IMG/VR virus record: IMGVR_UViG_3300031884_000002
Coordinates: 186,001 to 250,000 of that record
Reading direction: 5' to 3' (one strand)
DNA: 64,000 bases
Shown here: in pieces, positions 4,568-17,305 of the stretch
Layout of the letters: the number at the start of each line of letters is the position of its first letter
How positions within the stretch are numbered: the stretch's first letter is position 1
Made by a program: the position numbers and the translations under genes
Notes under the pieces: model-generated
The model's input: the letters and a program-made list of their open reading frames with translations, nothing else
Databases searched by the model: none
What the model was told of the DNA's origin: nothing

Positions 4568-5275
4568 TTAAATTATACATTTTCCATTAGCACAGCTTGC
4601 TTCGGCAGTATGTTGTGTCTCGTCGTCGTCTTCTTCTAGTTTTTTATAATCGACCATAGACCAATTTTTTAACAACTCGTCAAACTTTGCATTTTCTTCA
4701 TCTGTTATAACGGCTTCCATAGGAGGCTGTTTGTAAATTTTATCACCCGTAAAAGGCAATAGAGAAACTGCGGTAAAATCCTTTTGATTATCAAATAAAA
4801 ACTTGGTAACATCATCCCACTCTTCATCTTTTACCATAACCGTACAACTAACACTGTGGTTTAATGGCTTAGTATTTACACTTGTAGTTCCAGAATTAAC
4901 CCAATTTTCTTGGGTTAATTTAATAAGTCTTAAATGTTCTATTGCCGATAAATCAGCTTTAATTTTTACATTTTCCGGAACTTCTATTGGAAATGTAATA
5001 ACATCATCCGTTTTATTTTCGCTCCAAACACTTTCTTCACAAGCATGTTCATTAAATAATTTAAAATATTTATATACATTATCTTCTTTATTAACTTGTA
5101 TTCTTCTAAGATAGCGCCTAGAATGATGTGGATGTATTCCGGATGCGGCTGATAAAACAATGCTATTAGTATTATGTGTTACTGTTCCATTTTTTAATTG
5201 ATAAGTATGCGTTTTATCAACTTCTATATCTACTGTTAATTTACGCATTCCAGTTTTTATTGATTTTATTTTCAT
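4568..5275 (-). CDS. nrdJ: Class II RNR fragment 3: 35-aa IntC plus 200-aa C-extein
   Basis: ..TVDIEVDKTHTYQLKNGTVTHN|TNSIVLSAASGIHP..YLRRIQ..HSVSCTV; terminal redox pair CANGKC. Confidence 0.9.
   Translation of the reverse strand: MKIKSIKTGMRKLTVDIEVDKTHTYQLKNGTVTHNTNSIVLSAASGIHPHHSRRYLRRIQVNKEDNVYKYFKLFNEHACEESVWSENKTDDVITFPIEVPENVKIKADLSAIEHLRLIKLTQENWVNSGTTSVNTKPLNHSVSCTVMVKDEEWDDVTKFLFDNQKDFTAVSLLPFTGDKIYKQPPMEAVITDEENAKFDELLKNWSMVDYKKLEEDDDETQHTAEASCANGKCII
5171..5275 (-). mobile_element. Split intein RNR-2, C-fragment (35 aa, +1 Thr)
   Basis: Block F (VDIEV) and block G (THN|T). Confidence 0.9.
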
Positions 5276-6270
5276 AATTTTATATTTGTATTTATCTGAT
5301 CTATAACTTGTTCTATCGTTTCGGTTATATTCTTTTTAAATTGTTTTTCTTTTACTCGTAATATGACATATTTTTTCGACTGTAGTAAAAACTCTTTGAC
5401 AATATCACGCTCTTTTATATGTTCCATGTTATGCCAATATTCCCCATCAAATTCTATTATGATATTGGATATTACAACATCTGGCACACAATATTTTAAA
5501 TTATATGGATTGTCCTCAAATACAATAACTTCCGAATTAGTAATTGGACATCCTCTAAACAAATACTTCAAATCATCCGATAACGACATATATAATAATT
5601 TTGAAAATTGTAATTGTGACTTCGACTCTCCAAAAAAACAATTCATTTTACTATCTATATATTCACGCCATTTTATTTTTCCATCCGTATCTCCATATTT
5701 ACAAATAAAAAAATTCAAATCTCTACTTTGATATTTTTTAACTAATTCCGTTGCCTCAATCAATGACTTTCCTTTTTTTAAAACCCAATCATCGACTTTC
5801 CTAACACATACTCGATTTCGCTTCCATTCTTCAATTTTAAATTTTGCATCGGCTCCATATATACGAACACAATTTTCCATATTTAAAGATGATTTTTTAG
5901 AATGTATATTCTTTATATTTTTTATATCATCTTCAGAATATCCATTCAACCTTAAAGATTCTTCCGACACCGATAATTTTCTATTTTTTTCTTTATATTT
6001 TTTAGTTCCATCGACTTCTCCGTATTTTTTAATATAATATGGCAACGTTCCTCTTGGTTTTAACTTTTCAGTATATTCTTTATATTTTTTAATACCGTCA
6101 CATTTTCCAAATTTAAATATATACATTCGTTCAGAATGAGTGCATGAATATGTCTTAAATCGCTTAGTTCCAATAATCAGTCCATATTTATGAATTAAAA
6201 ACCTCTTTAATCTTAATAATTTTGTGTTTTTAGTTTTCATTAAACGTGTATTAAACCATATATTACACAT
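5272..6270 (-). CDS. Free-standing Vsr-like/PD-(D/E)xK homing endonuclease between the halves of split intein RNR-2
   Basis: KYGxxxG repeats; VPDVV..IIIEFDGEYWH..ILRVKE; ATGA overlap with the IntC ORF. Confidence 0.85.
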   Translation of the reverse strand: MCNIWFNTRLMKTKNTKLLRLKRFLIHKYGLIIGTKRFKTYSCTHSERMYIFKFGKCDGIKKYKEYTEKLKPRGTLPYYIKKYGEVDGTKKYKEKNRKLSVSEESLRLNGYSEDDIKNIKNIHSKKSSLNMENCVRIYGADAKFKIEEWKRNRVCVRKVDDWVLKKGKSLIEATELVKKYQSRDLNFFICKYGDTDGKIKWREYIDSKMNCFFGESKSQLQFSKLLYMSLSDDLKYLFRGCPITNSEVIVFEDNPYNLKYCVPDVVISNIIIEFDGEYWHNMEHIKERDIVKEFLLQSKKYVILRVKEKQFKKNITETIEQVIDQINTNIKL

Positions 6271-6289
6271 GACTTAATACATATAAATA

Positions 6290-7138
6290 TCAGTCAAATG
6301 ATAAAATATCATCGTTTTTTTCTAGATTTCTCGCTTCTACATATCCCCGACCTTTAACTAAAAATTTATGATTTGGAGTAGTTGTAACAATAGTTCCATC
6401 ATCCATTTCCACATCTATAGTATCGGATACTCCATTTATATATAACTTTGTAATATATTGCCAATCATTATTCTCATCTTTAACCATAATCTTAGAAGTT
6501 ACAGGTAAAAATTGTTTTTCATTTAAATTTTCATAATCTTCTAATTTATATCCATTTATCTCAAACAATTCCGATAAAGTTTTATCTCCGATAGAAGTTT
6601 TTATAATAGTCTCGGGAACAACACAACCTTCAGGTTTTATACATGTAATTCTTGCCGCTTGATTTATGCCTATTTTCTTAGCCCATATTTTATTAGTTTC
6701 GACTGCTACTTTGGCAGATTGTTTCTGAAACTCTGGATTGAATAATATATCAGGATTATCCATCATTCCAGTTATAGAAACTCCTAATAATGCTTCGTTA
6801 TTTGACAATTCCTCGGAAGTATGTCCTAAATATGGAAATGAAGTATATCCAGCTTGTAAAGTTCCTATTAAAGTAGCCGCCCAAGTAGCGTCTTTAAACT
6901 TATCACTGGAAGTTATTTTTGCTCCATTTATGGAAGTTAAATTACACATTTGGAATCCACAACGCCCATCATCGGTTACTGGAATAAATGAAATTTCGAA
7001 GCAGTTATGTATTAAAATATTATTAGCAAAAAAATTATGATTATTCTTTACAGATATATCATATACATCTTCATTTGGACGAACCGTTATTTTTTTTATT
7101 TTAATTCTGGTAATTTTTTTATTCTGTTTTGTTTCCAT
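6290..7138 (-). CDS. nrdJ: Class II RNR fragment 2: IntC (45 aa) - extein (126 aa) - IntN (111 aa)
   Basis: VYDISVKNNHNFFANNILIHN|CFEISF..FQMCNLTSIN..LLGVSITG..TCIKPEG|CVVPET..TTPNHKF. Confidence 0.92.
   Translation of the reverse strand: METKQNKKITRIKIKKITVRPNEDVYDISVKNNHNFFANNILIHNCFEISFIPVTDDGRCGFQMCNLTSINGAKITSSDKFKDATWAATLIGTLQAGYTSFPYLGHTSEELSNNEALLGVSITGMMDNPDILFNPEFQKQSAKVAVETNKIWAKKIGINQAARITCIKPEGCVVPETIIKTSIGDKTLSELFEINGYKLEDYENLNEKQFLPVTSKIMVKDENNDWQYITKLYINGVSDTIDVEMDDGTIVTTTPNHKFLVKGRGYVEARNLEKNDDILSFD
6293..6625 (-). mobile_element. Split intein RNR-2, N-fragment (111 aa)
   Basis: Block A CVVPETII and block B TTTPNHKF, then stop. Confidence 0.9.
7004..7138 (-). mobile_element. 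Split intein RNR-1, C-fragment (45 aa, +1 Cys)
   Basis: VYDISV..HNFFANNILIHN|C. Confidence 0.92.
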
Positions 7139-7260
7139 AATTTTAATTCTTTTCTTAAACTACTTCCTGTTGTTAAATAATCTTTTATATTTCTAATTGT
7201 AATTATAGGATATTCCGTAAATATATCCTGTTTTCCTCTATCGTAAATATTATATGGGAT
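7096..7260 (-). pseudogene. Probable 3' remnant of a deleted endonuclease gene
   Basis: 54 stop-free codons with no ATG, filling the spacer between intein halves and overlapping the IntC start, as the intact nucleases do at the other three loci. Confidence 0.5.
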
Positions 7261-7268
7261 TTATAAAA

Positions 7269-8552
7269 TCAATTTATTTTTAATAAAATATCAGTCTCTG
7301 TCAAATCCTTTGCCTCTATCCATCCACGTCCCTCCACAAATACCTTATGGTCCGGAGTTAATTTCAGAACTTCTCCATTTTCTCCTTGGATTTCTAATAT
7401 TTCTGCATTTTCACGGGTTTTCATAGCCATTGTTATTTCATTATTTTCTAAAGAACGAGTTTCTATATTATATGATATTGCATCAAACTTTTCCCCGTTG
7501 TTGTATCGTTCTACCAATTCGTCTATTCTAATATCTCCTTTAGTAGTAGATACCAATGTATCTCCTGTTACACAAGGGTTTAATAATTGACGTTCATCGA
7601 CGACATAGAGAAATCCAGGTTCTCCAAATTGTTTTGTTTTTTCTATTAACAATTTAAATTCTTTGAATGTAGTTCTTCCACGGACAATGATGGCTGAATT
7701 ATTACTTCTGGCTCTCTGTGGATTTTTATCAAACCAGTTACCAGTTTTGGCATTCATCATTTCATCATCGTCTGCATCGAATATCACGCTACATGCACTT
7801 CTTCTAATTCCTCCACTTAAAACAGCATCGGCACAATGCATAAGTATATCATATGCATTTATAGGCTTAAGTCGTACTTGGTGGTCCTTTTCAATAATTT
7901 CATCTAATAATTCTTTTACTTTTTTATGACAATTTTTAAGTCCTTTATAACCGGGGGCTTTACCACCACCCGTTTTAAGTTTTGCTCCTTTTGGTCTTAT
8001 TTTACTATAATCAAATACAATTTTTCTTCCGGAATATGCTGTATTTTTAAAATAACAATTTAACAATGCTTCGATACTATCGGACCATCCTTCAATCGAA
8101 TCTTGTACTACATATGTAATAATAGTTCCAGTTTTATCGTTGGCATTTACCAATGCAGGAAGACGATTTAGAAATCGTTTAGTTAATCCAAATCCAATAC
8201 CAGTCCCACATAATAATGCATAAAAAGACTCCGCAAAAGCACGAATAGAATCTATATGTCTTACTCCGCAATTAAACATTCTACAGTTATGAGCTTCTAT
8301 AGCCTTTCCTCCAAATTGCATAGAACGCATAGAGGGAGTAACTTTCCGTTCACGTACAAAATCAAATGCTCTTACAATTTCCAATTTATCTTTTTCATTT
8401 AAAAAACTGTATTTTTTTAAATGCATTTTTTCTACTCTGGATACAGTTTCTTCCCATGTTTCTCTTCTCTTTTTCTTTTCTTCATATTTTGCATATTTTG
8501 TAGTAAAGGTGAAGTTTCCCATCTCATCTAACATATTTGGTATCTTATTCAT
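7269..8552 (-). CDS. nrdJ: Class II (B12-dependent, monomeric-type) RNR fragment 1: 326-aa N-extein plus 101-aa IntN
   Basis: RRETWEETV, PSMRSMQFGG, RMFNC, FDYSKIRPKG, VLSGGIRRSA, GEPG..NP|CVTGDT. Confidence 0.92.
   Translation of the reverse strand: MNKIPNMLDEMGNFTFTTKYAKYEEKKKRRETWEETVSRVEKMHLKKYSFLNEKDKLEIVRAFDFVRERKVTPSMRSMQFGGKAIEAHNCRMFNCGVRHIDSIRAFAESFYALLCGTGIGFGLTKRFLNRLPALVNANDKTGTIITYVVQDSIEGWSDSIEALLNCYFKNTAYSGRKIVFDYSKIRPKGAKLKTGGGKAPGYKGLKNCHKKVKELLDEIIEKDHQVRLKPINAYDILMHCADAVLSGGIRRSACSVIFDADDDEMMNAKTGNWFDKNPQRARSNNSAIIVRGRTTFKEFKLLIEKTKQFGEPGFLYVVDERQLLNPCVTGDTLVSTTKGDIRIDELVERYNNGEKFDAISYNIETRSLENNEITMAMKTRENAEILEIQGENGEVLKLTPDHKVFVEGRGWIEAKDLTETDILLKIN
7272..7574 (-). mobile_element. 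Split intein RNR-1, N-fragment (101 aa)
   Basis: Block A CVTGDTLV and block B LTPDHKVF, then stop. Confidence 0.92.
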
Positions 8553-8611
8553 AAATTATTTTTAAAAACTATTGTAGTAATAACTATATCTATATTTTTA
8601 TAATAAATAAA

Positions 8612-9073
8612 TTATTCTCCTTTGGATTTATTCCATTTTTTACGGATTATATCTTTTTGAGCTTCTTCTTGACCTTTGAGTTTATTAATAAGTTCCATAC
8701 CTTCGATAGAAGCCATCTCATACATTCCAAGTCTCCCAGTAGCTGCATCCAAATCACAAATATAACTACTACCATCGGGACCAAATCGATTTTTAATAAT
8801 ATGGAACTTAGCAGTATTAGTAAGTTTATTATCCATTGTTCTTGCTTGAGAAGCTACAAAATCAGAAGTCATTAACTTCTTATATGATTCCGCCATGTCA
8901 TCTCCTTCAATAATATCATTCTGAGCGGCACTATTATGCGTATAAATATCATTAGCAAAAAACATATGAGTATCATCTACTGTAATATCAATAGTTTCTT
9001 GATCTCCTATACACTCAATACTAACAATTTCATCAAGGTTAAATTCTTCTGTGTTTAATTTATGTTCTTTCAT
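8612..9073 (-). CDS. Replicative helicase C-fragment: 47-aa IntC plus 106-aa C-extein
   Basis: TIDITVDDTHMFFANDIYTHN|SAAQ..MAESYKK..IIKNRFGPDG (DnaB-family KNRxG motif). Confidence 0.9.
   Translation of the reverse strand: MKEHKLNTEEFNLDEIVSIECIGDQETIDITVDDTHMFFANDIYTHNSAAQNDIIEGDDMAESYKKLMTSDFVASQARTMDNKLTNTAKFHIIKNRFGPDGSSYICDLDAATGRLGMYEMASIEGMELINKLKGQEEAQKDIIRKKWNKSKGE
8933..9073 (-). mobile_element. Split intein helicase, C-fragment (+1 Ser)
   Basis: Blocks F and G ending THN|S. Confidence 0.9.
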
Positions 9074-10118
9074 AATATTTATTTACAAATCTAATACATT
9101 TTTTAATTACTTTTTCTTTATTTTTAAGATATTCTTCTTCTGGAATTCTTAATATTTTATATCCTAATGATATTAAAAATAAATCTCTTCGCTTATCTTT
9201 TTCTATGATGGATGGGAAGGAATGCCAATAACTACCATCAAACTCTATTATAGCATTCCCACATTTAAAATCAACATAAATTAAGTTTAATCCATATTTT
9301 CCATTGGCAAAAAATGATTGTTCTTTATTATAGGTAAAATACTTTACCAATTCTTTTTGTTTAGATACTAATTTAGATGTTATATTATTAAACAACTCTT
9401 GTGATATTTTGCTGTATGGATTACTTTTACCTCTACAATTAGAAACCATTTTTTCTATATGGTTATAATATTTCTCAACCCCTTCAATCGAACCAAACCT
9501 TTCAATAAATCCTATTAGTGACAATGTATGATTTCTTTTATCATATGATGCCCTCCAACGTTTATATCCATCTTCTACTCCCCATTTACTTTGAAATTCC
9601 GGCAGCGTCCTTCCATTTTTCCATTTTCCTTTTTGCTTTCGTTTCTCAATTCCAAGTTTCCAATTTTTTAAATATTTCTCCCATTTTATTTTACCCTCTT
9701 CTTTTCCATATTTTTTAATATATCCATCCAATCCTAAATTAGATATTTTTCTTTTAGATATTATTTCTTTTTGTTCCACTGTATAATTTTGATTTCGTGC
9801 TGTAATTTTTTTATTTTGCTCCTCAAATATTTGTTTGCCGATTAAATCACCATATCTATGTTGTAATGATGCTAATGAAAATCCATCTTTTCCGAATTTT
9901 TTCGATTCGGTCAACCTCTTTACCCAACTTCCATCAACATTATATTTTAATAATTTAACTATCATTTCTTTTTTTATATTTCTAATATAATTTTTATTAA
10001 ATATTTTTATTATACTATCAATTTCCAATAAAGAGTGATTAGTTAAAATTGCCTTAAATGGAGCCGCAAATTTTTGTGATAAAAAATGTTCTCTATTTTT
10101 GTAATATAATTCTTTCAT
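9060..10118 (-). CDS. Free-standing Vsr-like homing endonuclease between the helicase intein halves
   Basis: KYG/KWG/RFG repeats; YVDFKC..IIEFDGSYWH..GYKILRIPE; same family as 5272..6270. Confidence 0.85.
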   Translation of the reverse strand: MKELYYKNREHFLSQKFAAPFKAILTNHSLLEIDSIIKIFNKNYIRNIKKEMIVKLLKYNVDGSWVKRLTESKKFGKDGFSLASLQHRYGDLIGKQIFEEQNKKITARNQNYTVEQKEIISKRKISNLGLDGYIKKYGKEEGKIKWEKYLKNWKLGIEKRKQKGKWKNGRTLPEFQSKWGVEDGYKRWRASYDKRNHTLSLIGFIERFGSIEGVEKYYNHIEKMVSNCRGKSNPYSKISQELFNNITSKLVSKQKELVKYFTYNKEQSFFANGKYGLNLIYVDFKCGNAIIEFDGSYWHSFPSIIEKDKRRDLFLISLGYKILRIPEEEYLKNKEKVIKKCIRFVNKYYERT

Positions 10119-10151
10119 ATTATATAAATATGGACCGTAACCACAAAAACA

Positions 10152-11501
10152 TCATTTTTTAGTAAATAATTTATCTCCTATAGATAAGCCACTTATAATA
10201 CTTTTTAGTTTTTCATATTGTGTTGGAAACCTATGATTTTCAGAACATTCTATAATTTTACCACTTTTCAATGTAATTCTATACACTGGTTGTTTTTTAA
10301 CAGGATATATATAAGATACTTTTCTATATCCGTTATGTGTTAATATCTTATCTCCAACTATTATATTTTTGATTTTAATATTACCTTTAAGTTCTTCGTT
10401 CACAATAGTTTGTAAAGACAAACACCGATTAGCCTGAGAGACCGACCAACCGGCTATTTGGAGTGACCCTAATACAGACCTGACCTCTTCGCTTTTTGCC
10501 CCGGCATCTTCATATGATTTAGAACCTTTGGGTGCAGTCGAAGATAATAACAAATCCACATAGTCAACTACCCACATATCAATATGAATACCGGTGACAA
10601 TTTGAAGATGTTCGGTAAATGCTTTTAAAGTATCAGCCGTAGCTGTTTTTAATGGAAAATATTTAATGTATAAAGTGCCAGCCCCATTAGCCTTCGTAGC
10701 ATCCAACGCTACTTTTATTTTAGCCTTATTTGCTTGACGTTCTTGAAATGGAATGCCAGATAAATAAGAATCATATCTGTGACCAGTATAATCAGCACTT
10801 AATTCCATGGTAAAATGAAGAACATTTTTTCCTTGTTTAAGTGCTTCCGCTCCAAAATTAACCAATGTCCAGCTTTTACATCCACCGGGATTTCCACATA
10901 TAATACCCAATTCTCCCTTTCCCAATCCGCCATCCATCAATTTATCTAAAATTGGTTGATTTGTTTTTATTGTGTATCGAGTATCTTTAGACGACCTAGT
11001 TTCAAAACTCTCAAAATAATTTTCCCCAATATCTCTATCCATTCCAGCTTTAAGAGCTTCATCTAACTTTAATTTAATAGTATCAAACTTTTGATTTTTA
11101 AGAAGTTCTAATGAATCTGCAATTGCCGATTTTAATTTTTGATGCTTACAAAACTCTAAAAACTTATCCTTAACATACGTTAAATCGGTAGCAGATGCAT
11201 TTTTAAAAGCGGATAATAACTGGGATTTTACCGCCATTTGAAGGGTACTATCAGAAATTAAATTACATTCTTGTCCCAAAATCATCATAGTAGGAGTATC
11301 TTTATACTGTTTCCAGTGGTCTATGATTTTGGAAACTATCCATTTTTGTTGGTCGGTATCAAAAAAATCAGGAGTTAATATATCATATATTCTCTCCAAA
11401 AAAGCCCTATCTGAAATTAGAACTGAAATTACTTTTGCTTGAAACTCTTTTTCATATTGTCGGGATGCTAACGTATCTACTTTATTATATTCTTCATTCA
11501 T
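10152..11501 (-). CDS. Replicative helicase (T4 gp41/DnaB-like) N-fragment: 359-aa extein plus 90-aa IntN
   Basis: GGLGKGEL..GNPGGCKS, HFTMEL, VVDYVDLL, SQANR|CLSLQT..CSENHRFPT. Confidence 0.9.
   Translation of the reverse strand: MNEEYNKVDTLASRQYEKEFQAKVISVLISDRAFLERIYDILTPDFFDTDQQKWIVSKIIDHWKQYKDTPTMMILGQECNLISDSTLQMAVKSQLLSAFKNASATDLTYVKDKFLEFCKHQKLKSAIADSLELLKNQKFDTIKLKLDEALKAGMDRDIGENYFESFETRSSKDTRYTIKTNQPILDKLMDGGLGKGELGIICGNPGGCKSWTLVNFGAEALKQGKNVLHFTMELSADYTGHRYDSYLSGIPFQERQANKAKIKVALDATKANGAGTLYIKYFPLKTATADTLKAFTEHLQIVTGIHIDMWVVDYVDLLLSSTAPKGSKSYEDAGAKSEEVRSVLGSLQIAGWSVSQANRCLSLQTIVNEELKGNIKIKNIIVGDKILTHNGYRKVSYIYPVKKQPVYRITLKSGKIIECSENHRFPTQYEKLKSIISGLSIGDKLFTKK
10155..10424 (-). 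mobile_element. Split intein helicase, N-fragment (90 aa)
   Basis: Block A CLSLQT and block B CSENHRF; resembles gp41-type split inteins as I recall them. Confidence 0.9.
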
Positions 11502-11585
11502 AGTTTAACAGTCTATAGTAAAAATAAGTATCTTTCAACTTTTTTTAAAACCGGATTTTATTAAACTTTTTTATATTAAAATAAT

Positions 11586-11613
11586 TTGACATTTTTCATT
11601 TTTAATATATACT
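11586..11613 (+). promoter_or_regulatory. sigma70-type promoter TTGACA-16-TATACT
   Basis: Upstream of 11686; the leader has SD-like AGAAAAGG. Confidence 0.7.
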
Positions 11614-11685
11614 TATAGGTAAGATACGAAATCGGATGTAGGTCCGCCAAGTTCTTAAATATTAACAATAAAAGAAAAGGTATAT

Positions 11686-12516
11686 ATGTCAAACTACGAA
11701 ATAAATGTTCTCGTCAATGGTTCACGTTGTAAAATCTATTCCCACAATGGAAAACGATTTATAGAAGCAAAATCAGGTTCTAATTATGTATTAGAAATTA
11801 AAAATAATTCATATAATAGAGTTCTATCAGTATCCAGTGTCGATTCGTTAAATACGATTACTGGAAAAAATGAAGATGCATTAACTGGGGCTGGTTATGT
11901 TATAAATGGATATACATCCGTAAAAATAGATGGATTTAGAATTAGCGATAATGAGGTATCACAATTTAAGTTCGATGTAAAATCAAAAGGATATGCCGCA
12001 TCTAAAAAAGATGGAAGTGAACGTAATGTTGGAGTTATTGGTGTTCGTATTTTTAATGAAAAAATAAAACCGACAGTAAGTTATACTAAATATAATAACG
12101 ATTATCTAAGTTGTGATAATACAAACCCATCGAAATATTATAATGATATAACATGGGGAAGTTCGATACACTCCCAAACAATGTGTAATGCATCAAATTG
12201 CACGTCTAATTCTTCTATTGGTGGATTATATGGAGATGGTAAATATGGATACAACATAAATAACGTGGTGCAAAACTATCCAATAGAACCCAGAGGATTT
12301 GATATGTCAACTTCATTTGGAGAAGCGAAGGAAAGTAAAGTTATCGAAGTAGAGTTTGAAAGGCAAAATATAATAGATTCAATTGATATTTATTACGCTA
12401 CAAGGGAATCTTTAATTGAGATGGGAGTTCCTATAACAAGTGAAAAACAAGTAGCATTTCCCGAACCTTTCAAAGAATCAAGATACTGTGAGCCTCCTAA
12501 AAATTGGAAACCATAA
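11686..12516 (+). CDS. Hypothetical beta-rich protein
   Basis: 276-aa ORF with promoter, SD-like sequence and terminator. Confidence 0.7.
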   Translation: MSNYEINVLVNGSRCKIYSHNGKRFIEAKSGSNYVLEIKNNSYNRVLSVSSVDSLNTITGKNEDALTGAGYVINGYTSVKIDGFRISDNEVSQFKFDVKSKGYAASKKDGSERNVGVIGVRIFNEKIKPTVSYTKYNNDYLSCDNTNPSKYYNDITWGSSIHSQTMCNASNCTSNSSIGGLYGDGKYGYNINNVVQNYPIEPRGFDMSTSFGEAKESKVIEVEFERQNIIDSIDIYYATRESLIEMGVPITSEKQVAFPEPFKESRYCEPPKNWKP

Positions 12517-12522
12517 ATAATA

Positions 12523-12543
12523 AAGCCCTTTTTATAAGGGCTT
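12523..12543. terminator. Probable bidirectional terminator between convergent genes
   Basis: aagccctt..aagggctt inverted repeat with A/T flanks. Confidence 0.7.
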
Positions 12544-12545
12544 AT

Positions 12546-13097
12546 TTATTGAGGATAAATGTCTTTTAGAAATTGAGGAGTTTCAAATACACTACCTTCT
12601 TTACAAATATTTCTATATAAATCTTTATAATATGTATTAGTATGAATATATTTAGGATTATATTCATCAAGTTTATGTAATAATGAAGTTGTCGTGGTTG
12701 GCATTTTTAAACACCATCCTACCATTGGTTTAGTATAAAAATCATCTTGGTCTGTTGGACTATCGAATACCACTTCTCCATATTCAATATCAACCTTATA
12801 TTCTCCATATACTGGTTCTTTTCGATACATATCATTATTATCATATGTAATAGGAATATAATTACGAGACATTTTAAGTATATCTCCTTCATATAAATCT
12901 TTTAAATAGTTGTCCTGAAGCCCAGTATATCTTTGTATAACACATTCTGATAAAGGTATTAACACAGTTGGTCCTGCATTTCCTAATACTACAATACAAT
13001 TAGATTCCAGTTCTTCAAATATAAAGTAATACATGTTATTTAACTTTTGATTCCATGCTCTAAATTTAAGAGTATTTATATCCATATTATTTTCCAT
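12546..13097 (-). CDS. YopX family protein (second copy)
   Basis: LKFRAWN..QRYTGLQDNYLKDLYEGDIL..GSVFETPQFL. Confidence 0.85.
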   Translation of the reverse strand: MENNMDINTLKFRAWNQKLNNMYYFIFEELESNCIVVLGNAGPTVLIPLSECVIQRYTGLQDNYLKDLYEGDILKMSRNYIPITYDNNDMYRKEPVYGEYKVDIEYGEVVFDSPTDQDDFYTKPMVGWCLKMPTTTTSLLHKLDEYNPKYIHTNTYYKDLYRNICKEGSVFETPQFLKDIYPQ

Positions 13098-14169
13098 CTC
13101 TTACTTGATTATCCAAGAATGAAAATACGTCAGATACCCAATTATTATAATCTGGCATATTTACATCTAATCTATCATTTCTTACTAATTTAAAAAATGC
13201 ATTTCTATCTAATTTTGGTATTTTATTTTCAGTTAATATTTCTTGAAGATGTAATTGGGAAGTAGTTCCTAACATAGTATCTTTTAATTGCATCAATGCA
13301 TAATTACGTTCTATTATAGATTTATTAGTAACAATATTCTCACATACTACAAACTTATTTCGCATATCAGTCGCATGATTCACAATCTCATCAATAGTAT
13401 GAATTGTTTCTTCTTTTAAATATGGAAAATGCTTACATACAGTTTTTAAACCGGCTCTTTCAATTCCATTTATATTATCACTTTTATCTCCGTCCATACT
13501 TCTAAATAACACAAAATTATTAGGATGAATATTATATTCCGAAATAACTTCATTCACTCCATATATTCGTTTTTTAGTAGGAGAATATATTTGAACTTTA
13601 GAACTTGCCAACTGTAAAAAATCCTTATCAGTTGACATTATAGTTACTTTTTTGGAGTTTTTAAATTGCTCCAATGCCAGATAAGATATTACGTCATCGG
13701 CTTCAACCATATTTTCGCTTACTATATTTACTGGTAATACTTGAAGATAATTTATAAATTGAAGATATTCTTTTTGTTTCTGTTGGTCTTCATTATCAGG
13801 AGTAGAATCATCATCATATACTCTATTCAATCTAATTTTATTTGTGCTATATGCTTTATAGGCAGGGAAGATTGCTTTTCTTTTTTGAGACCCCCCAACT
13901 CCGTCAAATACTACTATACAACGAGAAGGAGTTAATAATTTAATTGCCGCACCTAAAGATTTTAGAGAAGCCACAACTCCACCACTATGTTCGCCATTGG
14001 CATTCATTGAGACGGTGGCACAAAATGCTCGGATGAATAGATTATTACCATCAACTATTAAGATATGATTATTAGTTTTATCTCTCCAGTTTAAATGGGA
14101 ATCCTTCATTTCGGACTTTATGTTTTTAAAAAAAGAAAATAACTTGGCTTTATCTAAATCATCACTCAT
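13087..14169 (-). CDS. 5'-3' exonuclease/flap endonuclease (PolI 5' nuclease, T4 RNase H-like)
   Basis: ILIVDGNNLFIRAF, VVFDG, EADDVI, STDKDFLQL, GDKSDNINGI. Confidence 0.92.
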   Translation of the reverse strand: MSDDLDKAKLFSFFKNIKSEMKDSHLNWRDKTNNHILIVDGNNLFIRAFCATVSMNANGEHSGGVVASLKSLGAAIKLLTPSRCIVVFDGVGGSQKRKAIFPAYKAYSTNKIRLNRVYDDDSTPDNEDQQKQKEYLQFINYLQVLPVNIVSENMVEADDVISYLALEQFKNSKKVTIMSTDKDFLQLASSKVQIYSPTKKRIYGVNEVISEYNIHPNNFVLFRSMDGDKSDNINGIERAGLKTVCKHFPYLKEETIHTIDEIVNHATDMRNKFVVCENIVTNKSIIERNYALMQLKDTMLGTTSQLHLQEILTENKIPKLDRNAFFKLVRNDRLDVNMPDYNNWVSDVFSFLDNQVRDGK

Positions 14170-14483
14170 AAGTTTTTAATCCAATTCCATAATTTATTAT
14201 ACCATTTTATAATATATTTTCGTTTATGTTCTTTAATTGCGGTTTTCAATACTTTAGTAGGATATAATCTATTATTTAAGTTTGGTTCATCCAAATAAAA
14301 AACCAATCCAGTTGCTTTAGATAAAGGCTGTATTTCTAAAAACTCTTTGATATCAAATGCCGGAAACTTTTTATTTATAGTAGGTAATGTTATTCCCTTA
14401 AAAGAATCAATAGTATTTGATTCAATTGGAATGTTGAATGGTTTACGTTGTTCGTTTAATATTTTTTCTTTACGATGTCCCAT
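14166..14483 (-). CDS. Small chimeric protein: major-capsid-like segment plus prohead-protease-like segment
   Basis: aa 28-65 FKGITLPTINKKFP..EIQPLSKATGLVFYLD resembles the gp23 QPxxxPTGxxF region; aa 68-91 match ORF 17310..17717. Confidence 0.55.
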   Translation of the reverse strand: MGHRKEKILNEQRKPFNIPIESNTIDSFKGITLPTINKKFPAFDIKEFLEIQPLSKATGLVFYLDEPNLNNRLYPTKVLKTAIKEHKRKYIIKWYNKLWNWIKNL

Positions 14484-14489
14484 ATAAAA

Positions 14490-14517
14490 AGTATATACTA
14501 AATTGAAACATAATCAA
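14490..14517 (-). promoter_or_regulatory. sigma70-type promoter TTGATT-16-TATACT, 6 nt from ATG
   Basis: Read on the minus strand. Confidence 0.65.
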
Positions 14518-14534
14518 CTTATTTTAGAAAATAA

Positions 14535-14561
14535 AAAAGAGTGGACTTTCACCACTCTTTT
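14535..14561 (-). terminator. Intrinsic terminator after the recA C-fragment
   Basis: aaaagagtgg..ccactctttt inverted repeat with T-tract. Confidence 0.75.
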
Positions 14562-14580
14562 CGGTAACTATTTAGAAGAG

Positions 14581-15858
14581 TTATTCTTCTGATTTTGATT
14601 CAGTAATAGGAGGAACTTCCTCTGATACTTCTTCAATGTCTTCCACAATTTTAGAATTAGGGTCTCTATAATTCATAATATAATCATTACAAATCACTTG
14701 ATAAAACTCTTCTTTAAGATCTTTATCAGAGTTCATAAGTTCTACAAACTTAGAAGTATTAAACTCCAATGATTCTCCATTTGCTCTTTTCCATGTATAT
14801 TTAGCAGCAGTTCCAGTTATAATTCCACGCTCTTTTGAGAAATTAAGCCAACTTGCCAAATCTTGGATACCGGAATCATAATGGATTTCAAATTGTGCTC
14901 CTCGTGCTCCCGGTCCCATTCTACTCTTAATAACTTGACAAGTACATTTTACTCCAATTACTTCATCATTTTTCTTCAATTTTCCAATGGTTCCCATTCT
15001 TACTCTGGTAGAACACGCATAACTTAAAGATTTTCCACCGGGAGTAGTCCATTTGTCTCCGAATGGACCTGCATTCATATTAAATCTTAATTGATTAGTA
15101 AATACAATCAGGATTCTTTGTTTAGCAATAAGACCGGTTATTTTTCGGAATGCCTTTCCTAAGATTAGGGATTTTCCTGTATTATATCCATCAATCCCAT
15201 GTTCTGCTTCAAGTTCTTTTTCGATAGTAGCTTGTGCTACTGAATCAATAAAAATAGTTAATAATTTATCTTTATTTGCTTTTCTAAAAGCACCTATACA
15301 AGTTTCTATATGTGTAAATAAATCTTCCAATGTTGTAAATGGAACATAATTTGTATTTTTAACATTTACTCCAAGCGCAGTCCAAAACTTTCTATCAACT
15401 GCAAACTCAGAATCAAAAAATACACTATATCCACCAAGTTTACTTGTTTCTGCAATAATATGAGCGCACATTAAAGATTTACCGGTGTTATGATTTAGCA
15501 TCCCATTTCCAAAATAACAATGTTCTGGATGTTCGACCGTAATATCTACAATTTTATATTTTCCAATTAAAGCAACTGATAATACTATACTATAAGTTTC
15601 ATCATCACATAAAATACTATGTTTATTAGGGATTATATCTTTACATTCTACCCATCCAGAATTTGTAAAAAACTTATGTTCTCGACTCACTTTTATAGTT
15701 TTTCCATTATCTAATGTTACTAAATATGTATCCAATATACCTTTATTAACAAATCTGGTTATTTTTGTATATTCACCATTCAATGTTTTTACTTTTATGG
15801 TTTTTCCTTCTTTAAGGAGAGAATCTACTTCTCCTACAGTTATTATTTTTTTATTCAT
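14581..15858 (-). CDS. recA: RecA/UvsX C-fragment: 124-aa IntC plus 301-aa C-extein
   Basis: ..VSREHKFF..IVDITVEHPEHCYFGNGMLNHN|TGKSL..FFDSE..IFIDSVA..FTNQLR..TTPGGKSL. Confidence 0.9.
   Translation of the reverse strand: MNKKIITVGEVDSLLKEGKTIKVKTLNGEYTKITRFVNKGILDTYLVTLDNGKTIKVSREHKFFTNSGWVECKDIIPNKHSILCDDETYSIVLSVALIGKYKIVDITVEHPEHCYFGNGMLNHNTGKSLMCAHIIAETSKLGGYSVFFDSEFAVDRKFWTALGVNVKNTNYVPFTTLEDLFTHIETCIGAFRKANKDKLLTIFIDSVAQATIEKELEAEHGIDGYNTGKSLILGKAFRKITGLIAKQRILIVFTNQLRFNMNAGPFGDKWTTPGGKSLSYACSTRVRMGTIGKLKKNDEVIGVKCTCQVIKSRMGPGARGAQFEIHYDSGIQDLASWLNFSKERGIITGTAAKYTWKRANGESLEFNTSKFVELMNSDKDLKEEFYQVICNDYIMNYRDPNSKIVEDIEEVSEEVPPITESKSEE
15487..15858 (-). mobile_element. Atypically split intein RecA, long C-fragment (blocks B, F, G; +1 Thr)
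   Basis: Block B SREH and terminal HN|T in one ORF; block A absent. Confidence 0.9.
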
Positions 15859-16940
15859 ATAATATTTCTTTTTAATTTTTCTAAATTTTTATTGTCTATT
15901 ATTATTTTACCAGAATTTATAAGAGTCGATATAAAATTAATATCATATTTTGATATGTCAATATCATTCTCCGTCAAATACCCTCCATATTTTAAATTAA
16001 ATCTGGAACAATATTCTTTTAATGCCTCTGATTTTAACACATTTAATCTAATTGGCAACATATTATATGGTTTTATTTCATAAATCGAATTTCCTATTAC
16101 TATATCAGGACAGTATGTTCGACCAATTCCCATATCATCTTTATATTTTATTCTATGTTTTGATATTTGGAATGTAATATTGTTAAAAATCAAATGACAC
16201 ATTATTCGCAATTCTAATGAAGATCTACAAAAATATTTTATTCCATCGTTTAATATCCAACACTTAACTCCAATTCCTGCATTTTTTCCGGGCGATTTAC
16301 CATACATCGGATTTAACCGTCCGGTTTGTGGATTATTTTTAGGATATCCGTATTTTTCACATAATTGCTTGCATTTTACACTTCCAAATCCAAATTCATT
16401 CTTCAATGTATTATAAACTTGCTGTTTATATTTTAACTTATGTTTTAATTCCTCAAATCTCTTTATGATTTTTGAGGTAATTGGTTTTAATTCTACTCCC
16501 CGTGTAATTGGTATTGCTTTTCTTCCGTTTATCTTAGACTGTATATTAATATAATTTTTAGAATTCTCTTTTCTCTGTATATCTAAATTTTTATATTTTA
16601 AAAAATATAAAACTTGCTTATGCGAAATATTTTTCATTATGTTTTTAACATCTTGTAATATTCCTCCATTATTAATGGATTCCAATACTAACATTCCATA
16701 TATTTTATCTAATTCTATAAGTTTTATATTTCTTTTAGCAAGCGCATATTCACTAAGTTGATTTGATTTATATTTAATGTTATTATATTTTAATTTATCA
16801 ACTAAATTAAATTCATTTGCAATTCTCCTAATAGGCTTTCTTCCAATTTTTAATTGGAAGATTTCCGTTTCGCTTAAACCATCGTGTATAGATGATATAA
16901 TCGTGTCTATTGTCTGTGCATCTGTTACTTTTTTAGCCAT
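15855..16940 (-). CDS. Free-standing endonuclease, TnsA-like PD-(D/E)xK, between the RecA intein halves
   Basis: NPMYGK motif; CRSSLE..IKYKD..RTYCPDIVI..YEIKP; ATGA overlap with the IntC ORF. Confidence 0.75.
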   Translation of the reverse strand: MAKKVTDAQTIDTIISSIHDGLSETEIFQLKIGRKPIRRIANEFNLVDKLKYNNIKYKSNQLSEYALAKRNIKLIELDKIYGMLVLESINNGGILQDVKNIMKNISHKQVLYFLKYKNLDIQRKENSKNYINIQSKINGRKAIPITRGVELKPITSKIIKRFEELKHKLKYKQQVYNTLKNEFGFGSVKCKQLCEKYGYPKNNPQTGRLNPMYGKSPGKNAGIGVKCWILNDGIKYFCRSSLELRIMCHLIFNNITFQISKHRIKYKDDMGIGRTYCPDIVIGNSIYEIKPYNMLPIRLNVLKSEALKEYCSRFNLKYGGYLTENDIDISKYDINFISTLINSGKIIIDNKNLEKLKRNII

Positions 16941-16987
16941 AATATTTAATATTGGTAATATAATATAAATATCAGGCTACATAAAAA

Positions 16988-17305
16988 TTATTCAATAATA
17001 ACTTCAATTAAAGTATCTTCCGTAACACAGCCTTCTAATCCTGATAATTCGGTCACTCTACCTACAGGTAGACCTCCGTGTGCTCTATTAGAAATTGCCA
17101 AATCTAATAAAGTTGAACCGGTTGATACCCATTCTTTTATTTCGGATGGATTATCATCTTCATCTACGAAATATGCTACTTTGGTTCCATCTTTAGATGC
17201 CTTATTCATTGCGGTTTGTAGCAACAACGCTAAATCATCTCTATTAACATTAGACTCTACTTCTACATGTTTTGATTTTGTATTTATATTTTTTTCTTTT
17301 GCCAT
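16988..17305 (-). CDS. recA: RecA/UvsX N-fragment: 92-aa extein plus 13-aa IntN
   Basis: VSTGSTLLDLAIS..GGLPVGRVTELSGLEG|CVTEDTLIEVIIE*. Confidence 0.9.
   Translation of the reverse strand: MAKEKNINTKSKHVEVESNVNRDDLALLLQTAMNKASKDGTKVAYFVDEDDNPSEIKEWVSTGSTLLDLAISNRAHGGLPVGRVTELSGLEGCVTEDTLIEVIIE
16991..17029 (-). mobile_element. Atypically split intein RecA, 13-aa N-fragment
   Basis: Block A only (CVTEDTLI), then TAA. Confidence 0.85.

Follow-up and report, generated by a model that had tools for sequence, protein, structure and literature searches.

The closest described systems are the fractured genes found in phage-like metagenomic loci, in which a split intein divides a gene and a free-standing homing-endonuclease gene lies between the two halves (Dassa 2009, PMC2677866). 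Split inteins from metagenomic phages (gp41-1, gp41-8, NrdJ-1, IMPDH-1 and VidaL) are now core tools of protein engineering, and the supply of orthogonal pairs with matched kinetics sets the limit for one-pot ligation of many fragments. Here we describe a locus in IMG/VR virus record IMGVR_UViG_3300031884_000002 at which four split inteins divide three genes. The whole stretch of DNA analysed, called the window, has 64,000 bases and corresponds to bases 186001-250000 of this 353,772-bp record, which is rated complete and comes from a genome of ~29% GC. Open reading frame (ORF) listing and boundary calculation place UvsX, the gp41 helicase and a class II ribonucleotide reductase (RNR), NrdJ, on the minus strand between window positions 4568 and 17305, where they are encoded in seven pieces. 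In this region a ~354-kb T4-like freshwater phage carries its module for replication, recombination and nucleotide metabolism, and related contigs repeat the gene order gp32 - UvsX - 5'-3' exonuclease - gp41 - NrdJ.

The resemblance to the fractured genes of Dassa 2009 (PMC2677866) is close. The window shares their layout, strand arrangement and short spacers as well as the host genes gp41 and NrdJ, and UvsX is among the upstream ORFs at three gp41 loci of that study. The same Vsr-like endonuclease family occurs at two sites of the window, and the endonuclease-less gp41-7 locus resembles what we call RNR site a. The window differs from those loci in holding four elements within 13 kb (five in the genome), in having two elements in one gene, which produces a middle piece with the order C-terminal intein half (IntC), extein, N-terminal intein half (IntN), and in a UvsX endonuclease that fits no recognised family. 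In passing, the same paper mentions a DnaE fragment with the C-part of an additional intein. The element type is a known one, and characterised relatives exist for two of the four inteins, but the multi-piece NrdJ layout appears to be undescribed: in the literature searched, which was incomplete so that absence is no proof of novelty, we found no natural protein assembled by at least two split inteins, no three- or four-piece assembly recurrent across lineages and no genome with five split inteins. As a whole, the locus is quite probably explained best by independent invasions, trans-splicing of cognate halves and correct pairing through passive divergence.

NrdJ is divided by two inteins, a and b, into three pieces, which like all module features described below lie on the minus strand. 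Piece 1 (7269-8552) consists of a 326-aa extein (7575-8552) that ends LLNP and matches Pfam RNR_Alpha and RNR-II_ins_dom and PDB 1L1L, followed by the 101-aa IntN of intein a (7272-7574), which starts CVTGDT, has a charge of -9 and scores 46.2 bits against Pfam Intein_splicing. Piece 2 (6290-7138) opens with the 45-aa IntC of intein a (7004-7138; charge +5), which ends IHN and is followed by the Cys of the NPC motif as +1 residue, continues with a 126-aa extein (6626-7003; CFEISF to CIKPEG) and closes with the 111-aa IntN of intein b (6293-6625; charge -9), which starts CVVPET. Piece 3 (4568-5275) joins the 35-aa IntC of intein b (5171-5275; charge +4), which ends THN before a +1 Thr and has near-identical architecture in viral contigs L054-L057, to a 200-aa extein (4571-5170). 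Exteins 2 and 3 are colinear with uninterrupted homologues.

The two other genes are each divided once. The gp41 N-piece (10152-11501) carries a 359-aa DnaB-like helicase extein (10425-11501; Pfam DnaB_C), which ends SQANR, and a 90-aa IntN (10155-10424) that starts CLSLQT, has a net charge of +10 and sits at the gp41-8-like insertion point NR|SA. Its C-piece (8612-9073) has a 47-aa IntC (8933-9073) with a net charge of -10, ending THN before a +1 Ser, and a 106-aa extein (8615-8932) assigned by tblastn colinearity with the uninterrupted gp41 of L002 and L054. The UvsX N-piece (16988-17305) combines a 92-aa UvsX/RecA extein (17030-17305; Pfam RecA profile positions 3-63), which ends GLEG in the Walker A loop, with an IntN of only 13 aa, CVTEDTLIEVIIE (16991-17029), an atypical split directly after strand beta-2. 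The C-piece (14581-15858) holds the correspondingly long IntC of 124 aa (15487-15858), with block B SREH, a terminal NHN, a +1 Thr, a Pfam Intein_splicing score of 35.8 bits and PDB matches to mini-inteins, VidaL and gp41-1 among them, and then a 301-aa extein (14584-15486) that starts TGKS and covers RecA profile positions 62-261 (E 1.6e-30).

All four inteins keep Cys1, a block B motif of the TxxH type (TPDH, TPNH, SENH, SREH), the terminal HN and the +1 nucleophile. N- and C-pieces are separate ORFs on one strand, with an endonuclease gene between the halves at three of the four loci, so that layout, catalytic residues and colinear host proteins are together those of class 1 split inteins (HINT fold) in fractured genes. 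In a PDB search, both halves of RNR intein a hit the NrdJ-1 intein 8UBS (N half, E 1e-10; C half, 1e-7), and other intein pieces hit gp41-1 (6QAZ), VidaL (6VGV) and DnaX/DnaB mini-inteins. Judged by sequence, the pieces are true intein halves and not chance matches. An earlier, sequence-only reading of this DNA had given the IntN lengths as 101, 111, 90 and 13 aa, the IntC lengths as 45, 35, 47 and 124 aa, the +1 residues as Cys, Thr, Ser and Thr and the middle extein as 126 aa, and we reproduced every one of these values. Its count of four split-intein pairs in 13 kb holds for the window but falls short as a genome total, since a fifth split intein interrupts dUTPase (genome G000:C1:163241-165240), ~22 kb before the window start. 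That intein has a 90-aa IntN starting CFSGDC (charge -10) and a 36-aa IntC ending LIHN (charge +3) with a +1 Cys; a 303-aa endonuclease ORF at 163776-164684 lies between the halves, and the block B histidine is missing (ITPGTQ).

The splits are exact with respect to the host proteins. In the NrdJ homologues of L001-L015, viral contigs that are the closest relatives (~80% identical), the exteins are contiguous and abut exactly at 326|46 and 171|36. The uninterrupted UvsX of L002 and L054 joins at 92|125, and gp41 in the same contigs at about 359|48. Because the RecA profile matches of the two UvsX pieces meet at positions 62/63, the UvsX intein can be placed in the Walker A loop (GLEG|TGKS). 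The +1 Cys of intein a is the thiyl-radical Cys, given the NP|C site, the published site description and the NrdJ-1 junction NPC|SEI. The halves of RNR-a match both ends of contiguous LAGLIDADG inteins that L017, L022 and L024 carry at this position, and those of RNR-b do so at their site in L023 and L031; as each N/C pair matches the ends of one contiguous intein, the cognate halves of a and b are fixed. That the stops and inserted genes are unreal, products of faulty assembly or sequencing, has a virtually negligible chance of being true: the exact RNR_2 and UvsX_N proteins are present on 16 contigs, 16 lake-water metagenome runs hold the complete NrdJ stretch, a freshwater run of another study yields identical contig pieces spanning the piece boundaries, and the same architecture appears in many unrelated assemblies.

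We propose that selfish intein/homing-endonuclease elements invaded four conserved active-site positions: the Walker A loop of UvsX, the SQxNR motif of gp41 (the gp41-8 site), the NrdJ NP|C site, which directly precedes the thiyl-radical Cys, and the NrdJ KPxG|T site. The invasions would have been independent, because syntenic phages differ in which of the inteins they carry. Each intein would have come to be divided into separately translated halves, with the endonuclease lost at RNR site a. After translation, cognate halves would associate, fold into a HINT domain and splice in trans, with expected products of ~393 aa for UvsX, ~465 aa for gp41 and ~652 aa for NrdJ. For NrdJ this would require two consecutive trans-splicing reactions on three polypeptides, a natural case of tandem trans-splicing. 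Selection would serve as a filter only, acting against cross-reacting combinations.

We infer that the halves do splice, but there are two ways in which they might not: as non-covalent docking domains that hold the pieces together, or as remnants in genes that are decaying and dispensable. A precedent for the former is described in PMC3045599, in which a fragmented phage RNR (NrdA) is assembled through interaction domains from a mobile element, and the dUTPase intein without its block B histidine and RNR site a without its endonuclease speak for a lack of splicing as well. However, nucleophiles and catalytic residues are kept in the four window inteins, in 14 middle NrdJ fragments and in ~30 UvsX N-pieces, and the NrdJ exteins are ~80% identical to intact homologues and free of frameshifts, all of which makes it improbable that the pieces do not splice.

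Two of the inteins can be compared directly with characterised ones. The gp41 intein shares its insertion point with gp41-8 (Pinto 2020 supplement), which that paper gives as LNR|SAY and which reads NR|SA in the window, and both start CLSL and end THN. Their lengths are similar as well, 88+45 aa for gp41-8 and 90+47 aa here, and ~22/38 aligned IntC positions are identical by a hand count made by eye without a tool alignment. The window intein is a diverged allele of gp41-8. NrdJ-1 (PDB 8UBS) is the best structural-database relative of both RNR-a halves and has the same charge polarity, with a negative N half and a positive C half. Although homologous, RNR-a is not an allele of NrdJ-1, because its insertion lies one residue upstream, at LLNP|CFEI with a +1 Cys, where NrdJ-1 has NPC|SEI and a +1 Ser. 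In the relative P0079, unlike window RNR-a, it is the NrdJ-1 site that occurs together with intein b. The P0079 middle fragment has a closely NrdJ-1-like IntC and the NrdJ-1 junction (HN|SEI), yet also an IntN-b, and relatives of the widely used NrdJ-1 locus may be three-piece genes.

The three-piece NrdJ is not peculiar to this genome. A length-restricted homology search with piece 2 recovered at least 13 more protein clusters (250-320 aa) in which IntC-a and IntN-b flank extein 2 at these two sites. When the 14 middle fragments are aligned, H44, N45, C172, T254 and H257 do not vary and C46 hardly does; Cys1 and the block B T..H of IntN-b are the same in all 14. Genomic context confirms a three-piece NrdJ in L054, L056 and L057, with differing endonuclease types, and L055:2585-7179 goes one step further, with a four-piece NrdJ divided by three split inteins at LLL|CGTG, NP|C and KPEG|T. 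Piece 1 of that gene is followed by a 202-bp gap that codes for the tail of a Vsr-like endonuclease (GDYWH motif) and piece 2 by only 25 bp, and an HNH-type ORF precedes piece 4. UvsX and gp41 are intact in L054, and gp41 in L056 is split elsewhere than in the window, so inteins at these loci come and go independently. The recurrence of the middle-fragment layout in at least 13 clusters and in a four-piece NrdJ, with catalytic residues invariant, argues that it works in nature.

Relatives also show other arrangements at these host genes. In L056:4663-7534, gp41 is split at the P-loop (GGGK|C) by an intein with an unusual division: its IntN has ~55 aa, and block B lies in an IntC of ~136 aa, with a Vsr-like endonuclease between the halves. 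Across the NrdJ family (L031, L006, L007, L026 and L027) inteins occupy at least five or six different positions: residue ~94/95, LLL|C, NP|C, NPC|S, one ~20 aa further downstream, and KPxG|T/S. A single 1744-aa NrdJ ORF at L031:5103-10337 contains three contiguous inteins.

The order IntC-extein-IntN of NrdJ piece 2 is that of constructs used to cyclise proteins, and the sequence-only reading had ascribed a cyclisation topology to it. The order itself is there, but the two halves belong to different inteins. In SICLOPPS, by which a split intein closes peptides or proteins into circles, both halves come from one intein and flank the extein; those of fragment 2 come from two inteins that are 31% identical, and each matches a different contiguous intein. 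Because its IntC is from intein a and its IntN from intein b, fragment 2 is not a SICLOPPS cassette. A better counterpart is engineered tandem trans-splicing, used for three-segment ligation and for protein 'transposition', where the middle construct IntC(a)-X-IntN(b) has the order of fragment 2, with the difference that fragment 2 is natural and not designed. The locus and its relatives suggest that nature already carries out tandem trans-splicing, with NrdJ made from three pieces, and from four in one contig.

It is conceivable that some non-cognate halves nevertheless react, IntC-a with IntN-b to give a 126-aa circle, or the RNR-a IntN with the dUTPase IntC to give a chimera. We consider this highly improbable; if true, the phage would gain extra products by alternative protein splicing instead of strict orthogonality. 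A fuller version, in which non-cognate halves yield a functional 126-aa circle, an NrdJ without its middle, or NrdJ-dUTPase or NrdJ-helicase chimeras, is allowed by the topology, by the common charge polarity of the RNR-a, RNR-b and dUTPase inteins and by the near identity of the C-terminal 21 residues of the RNR-a and dUTPase IntCs. It is slightly more improbable still, as the closest relatives encode a single colinear NrdJ, overall intein identity is 25-33%, and no conserved feature points to a role for either a circle or a chimera. Skipping the middle would also cost NrdJ its thiyl-radical Cys, the residue at +1 of intein a. We found nothing in support of the alternative protein splicing that the sequence-only reading had offered as one of two outcomes.

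Its other outcome, a natural orthogonal set produced by selection, calls for a force that the data do not need. Compared in pairs, the five split inteins are 25-33% identical (49/160, or 31%, for a versus b), the charge polarity of the gp41 intein (IntN +10, IntC -10) is reversed relative to RNR-a, RNR-b and dUTPase, and the UvsX intein has its split elsewhere; its 13-aa IntN together with a canonical IntC would miss most of the fold. In published matrices, 15/16 divergent split inteins, including gp41-8 and NrdJ-1, were mutually orthogonal; cross-reaction does occur between close alleles, for example those of the cyanobacterial DnaE inteins, and the beta3/beta6 charge network alone is not decisive. 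Because of this low identity, reversed charge and differing split site, we infer from sequence and by analogy that the halves are likely to pair correctly through orthogonality, and that this orthogonality is probably a passive by-product of deep divergence. For assembly to be productive, cognate pairing would in any case, as a matter of logic, have to dominate.

Some observations weigh against this account. RNR-a, RNR-b and dUTPase have one and the same polarity (IntN -9/-9/-10, IntC +5/+4/+3), so charge cannot separate these three. The last 21 IntC residues of RNR-a and dUTPase are identical at 16/21 positions and their DNA at 56/64, and for Npu DnaE the C-terminal 16 IntC residues are enough for trans-splicing. 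The combination of RNR-a with the dUTPase intein therefore looks like the riskiest, or least safe, of the pairs. Two sites (UvsX and RNR-b) use a +1 Thr, the least common nucleophile. As for the 64-bp DNA match itself (56/64), gene conversion between the two IntCs was considered and is unnecessary, because the 16/21 shared residues together with the strong AT codon bias of a 29% GC genome suffice.

A more active role for selection, in which co-resident inteins, especially a and b within one polypeptide, were shaped into an orthogonal set beyond what divergence provides, seems rather unlikely to us, though it has arguments in its favour. Inteins a and b have stayed together in 13 or more diverged protein clusters as well as in the four-piece gene. 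Cross-association within the middle fragment would be intramolecular and kinetically favoured, so strong counter-selection might be expected, and in P0038 and P0040 IntC-a carries a negative charge, as IntN-b does, so that the two would repel each other. However, the charge of IntC-a ranges from -8 to +8 across genomes, a pattern too inconsistent for a repulsive design. Inteins a and b represent separate families whose divergence is ancient, with contiguous alleles of each at the respective site, and divergent split inteins are orthogonal by default in the published matrices. A complex prediction in which IntN-a and IntN-b competed for IntC-a scored 0.32, against 0.88 when an unrelated protein replaced the non-cognate IntN, and as it returned 'no answer' it was not used as evidence. 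An AlphaFold2 model of the middle fragment, built with 14 homologues, had a mean predicted local distance difference test score of 72, and its output came without contacts, nor can a sequential structure search detect a hybrid domain that is circularly permuted, so docking of IntC-a with IntN-b cannot be read from it. The locus and its relatives provide pairs that coexist in one polypeptide across many lineages, which makes them good candidates for pre-tested orthogonality.

The UvsX intein is of separate interest because of its IntN. N-pieces of ~100 aa ending in a 13-14-aa CVTEDT.I.VII[ED] are present in four viral contigs and ~30 protein clusters. With a 13-aa IntN and a 124-aa IntC that contains SREH and NHN, this is an atypically split intein of the S1 type, and its IntC aligns to residues 23-141 of the VidaL chain. 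Atypically split UvsX inteins from Lake Vida have reportedly been listed by Burton et al. in 2020. Like VidaL (16-aa IntN, PDB 6VGV) and PolB16 (15 aa), the UvsX intein is split after beta-2 and has a long IntC with blocks B, F and G. In comparison with VidaL it is only distantly related (E about 1e-4), and its host site is the UvsX Walker A loop. Natural atypical split inteins have IntNs of 15-37 aa according to recent papers, with that of PolB16 the shortest characterised, so the 13-14 aa of UvsX fall below the published natural range. A natural family with a 13-14-aa IntN was not found in the literature searched, which was incomplete and lacked key VidaL papers. An IntN shorter than any characterised natural one is within easy reach of peptide synthesis.

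At the gp41 locus, a Vsr-like (DUF559/MTES_1575) free-standing homing endonuclease of 352 aa (9060-10118) scores 33.3 bits against Pfam DUF559, for which the cut-off is 20.6 bits, and its gene overlaps the start of the downstream piece by 14 nt. The Vsr-like (DUF559) free-standing homing endonuclease of RNR site b (332 aa; 5272-6270; Pfam DUF559 23.0 bits) runs 4 nt into the next gene. At RNR site a there is just an AT-rich spacer of 130 bp (7139-7268) without an endonuclease gene. The putative free-standing homing endonuclease at the UvsX locus (361 aa; 15855-16940), which also overlaps the next start by 4 nt, has no Pfam or PHROG family and fails the Vsr/DUF559 core match. It is kept at the same position in relatives (L050:1784-2884, L052:1697-2995 and L053:1874-2998), and a C-terminal PD...EIK pattern in its sequence suggests a PD-(D/E)xK nuclease; it may represent an undescribed homing-endonuclease family. 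Among relatives, the endonuclease type varies at one and the same site between Vsr-like, GIY-YIG, HNH, NUMOD3 and PD-ExK-like. At RNR site a, the endonucleases of L054 and L057 have sub-threshold matches to Phage_endo_I and TnsA-like N.

Inteins are also found elsewhere in the genome. A portal-like ORF of 1424 aa (G000:C1:295035-299306) contains two contiguous inteins with HNH-like inserts, and the P-loop of a PhoH-like ATPase ORF of 627 aa (G000:C1:330742-332622) is interrupted by a contiguous LAGLIDADG intein. The genome total is thus at least eight, five of them split and three contiguous, and with their polymorphic relatives they form a data set on how elements made of an intein and an endonuclease invade, split and decay. 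A 442-aa ORF at G000:C1:332945-334270 resembles, from its sequence only, a TnpB of the IS200/IS605 type, with a C-terminal CxxC...CxxC zinc finger.

Within the window, a whole-region megablast against GenBank phages gave no match, no tRNA genes were found, and a sigma-70 promoter scan did no better on the real sequence than on shuffled sequence (93 sites versus 92). Terminator-like hairpins fall outside the split genes and none lies between pieces, the exception being a weak hairpin at 7825-7839 inside RNR_1; one, at 14534-14562, is just 3' of the UvsX C-piece. Amid the minus-strand module there is a single plus-strand ORF (11686-12516; 276 aa), which has no family match. A perfect bidirectional terminator-like hairpin at 12523-12543 lies 3' of it and adjoins a YopX-like ORF on the minus strand (12546-13097).

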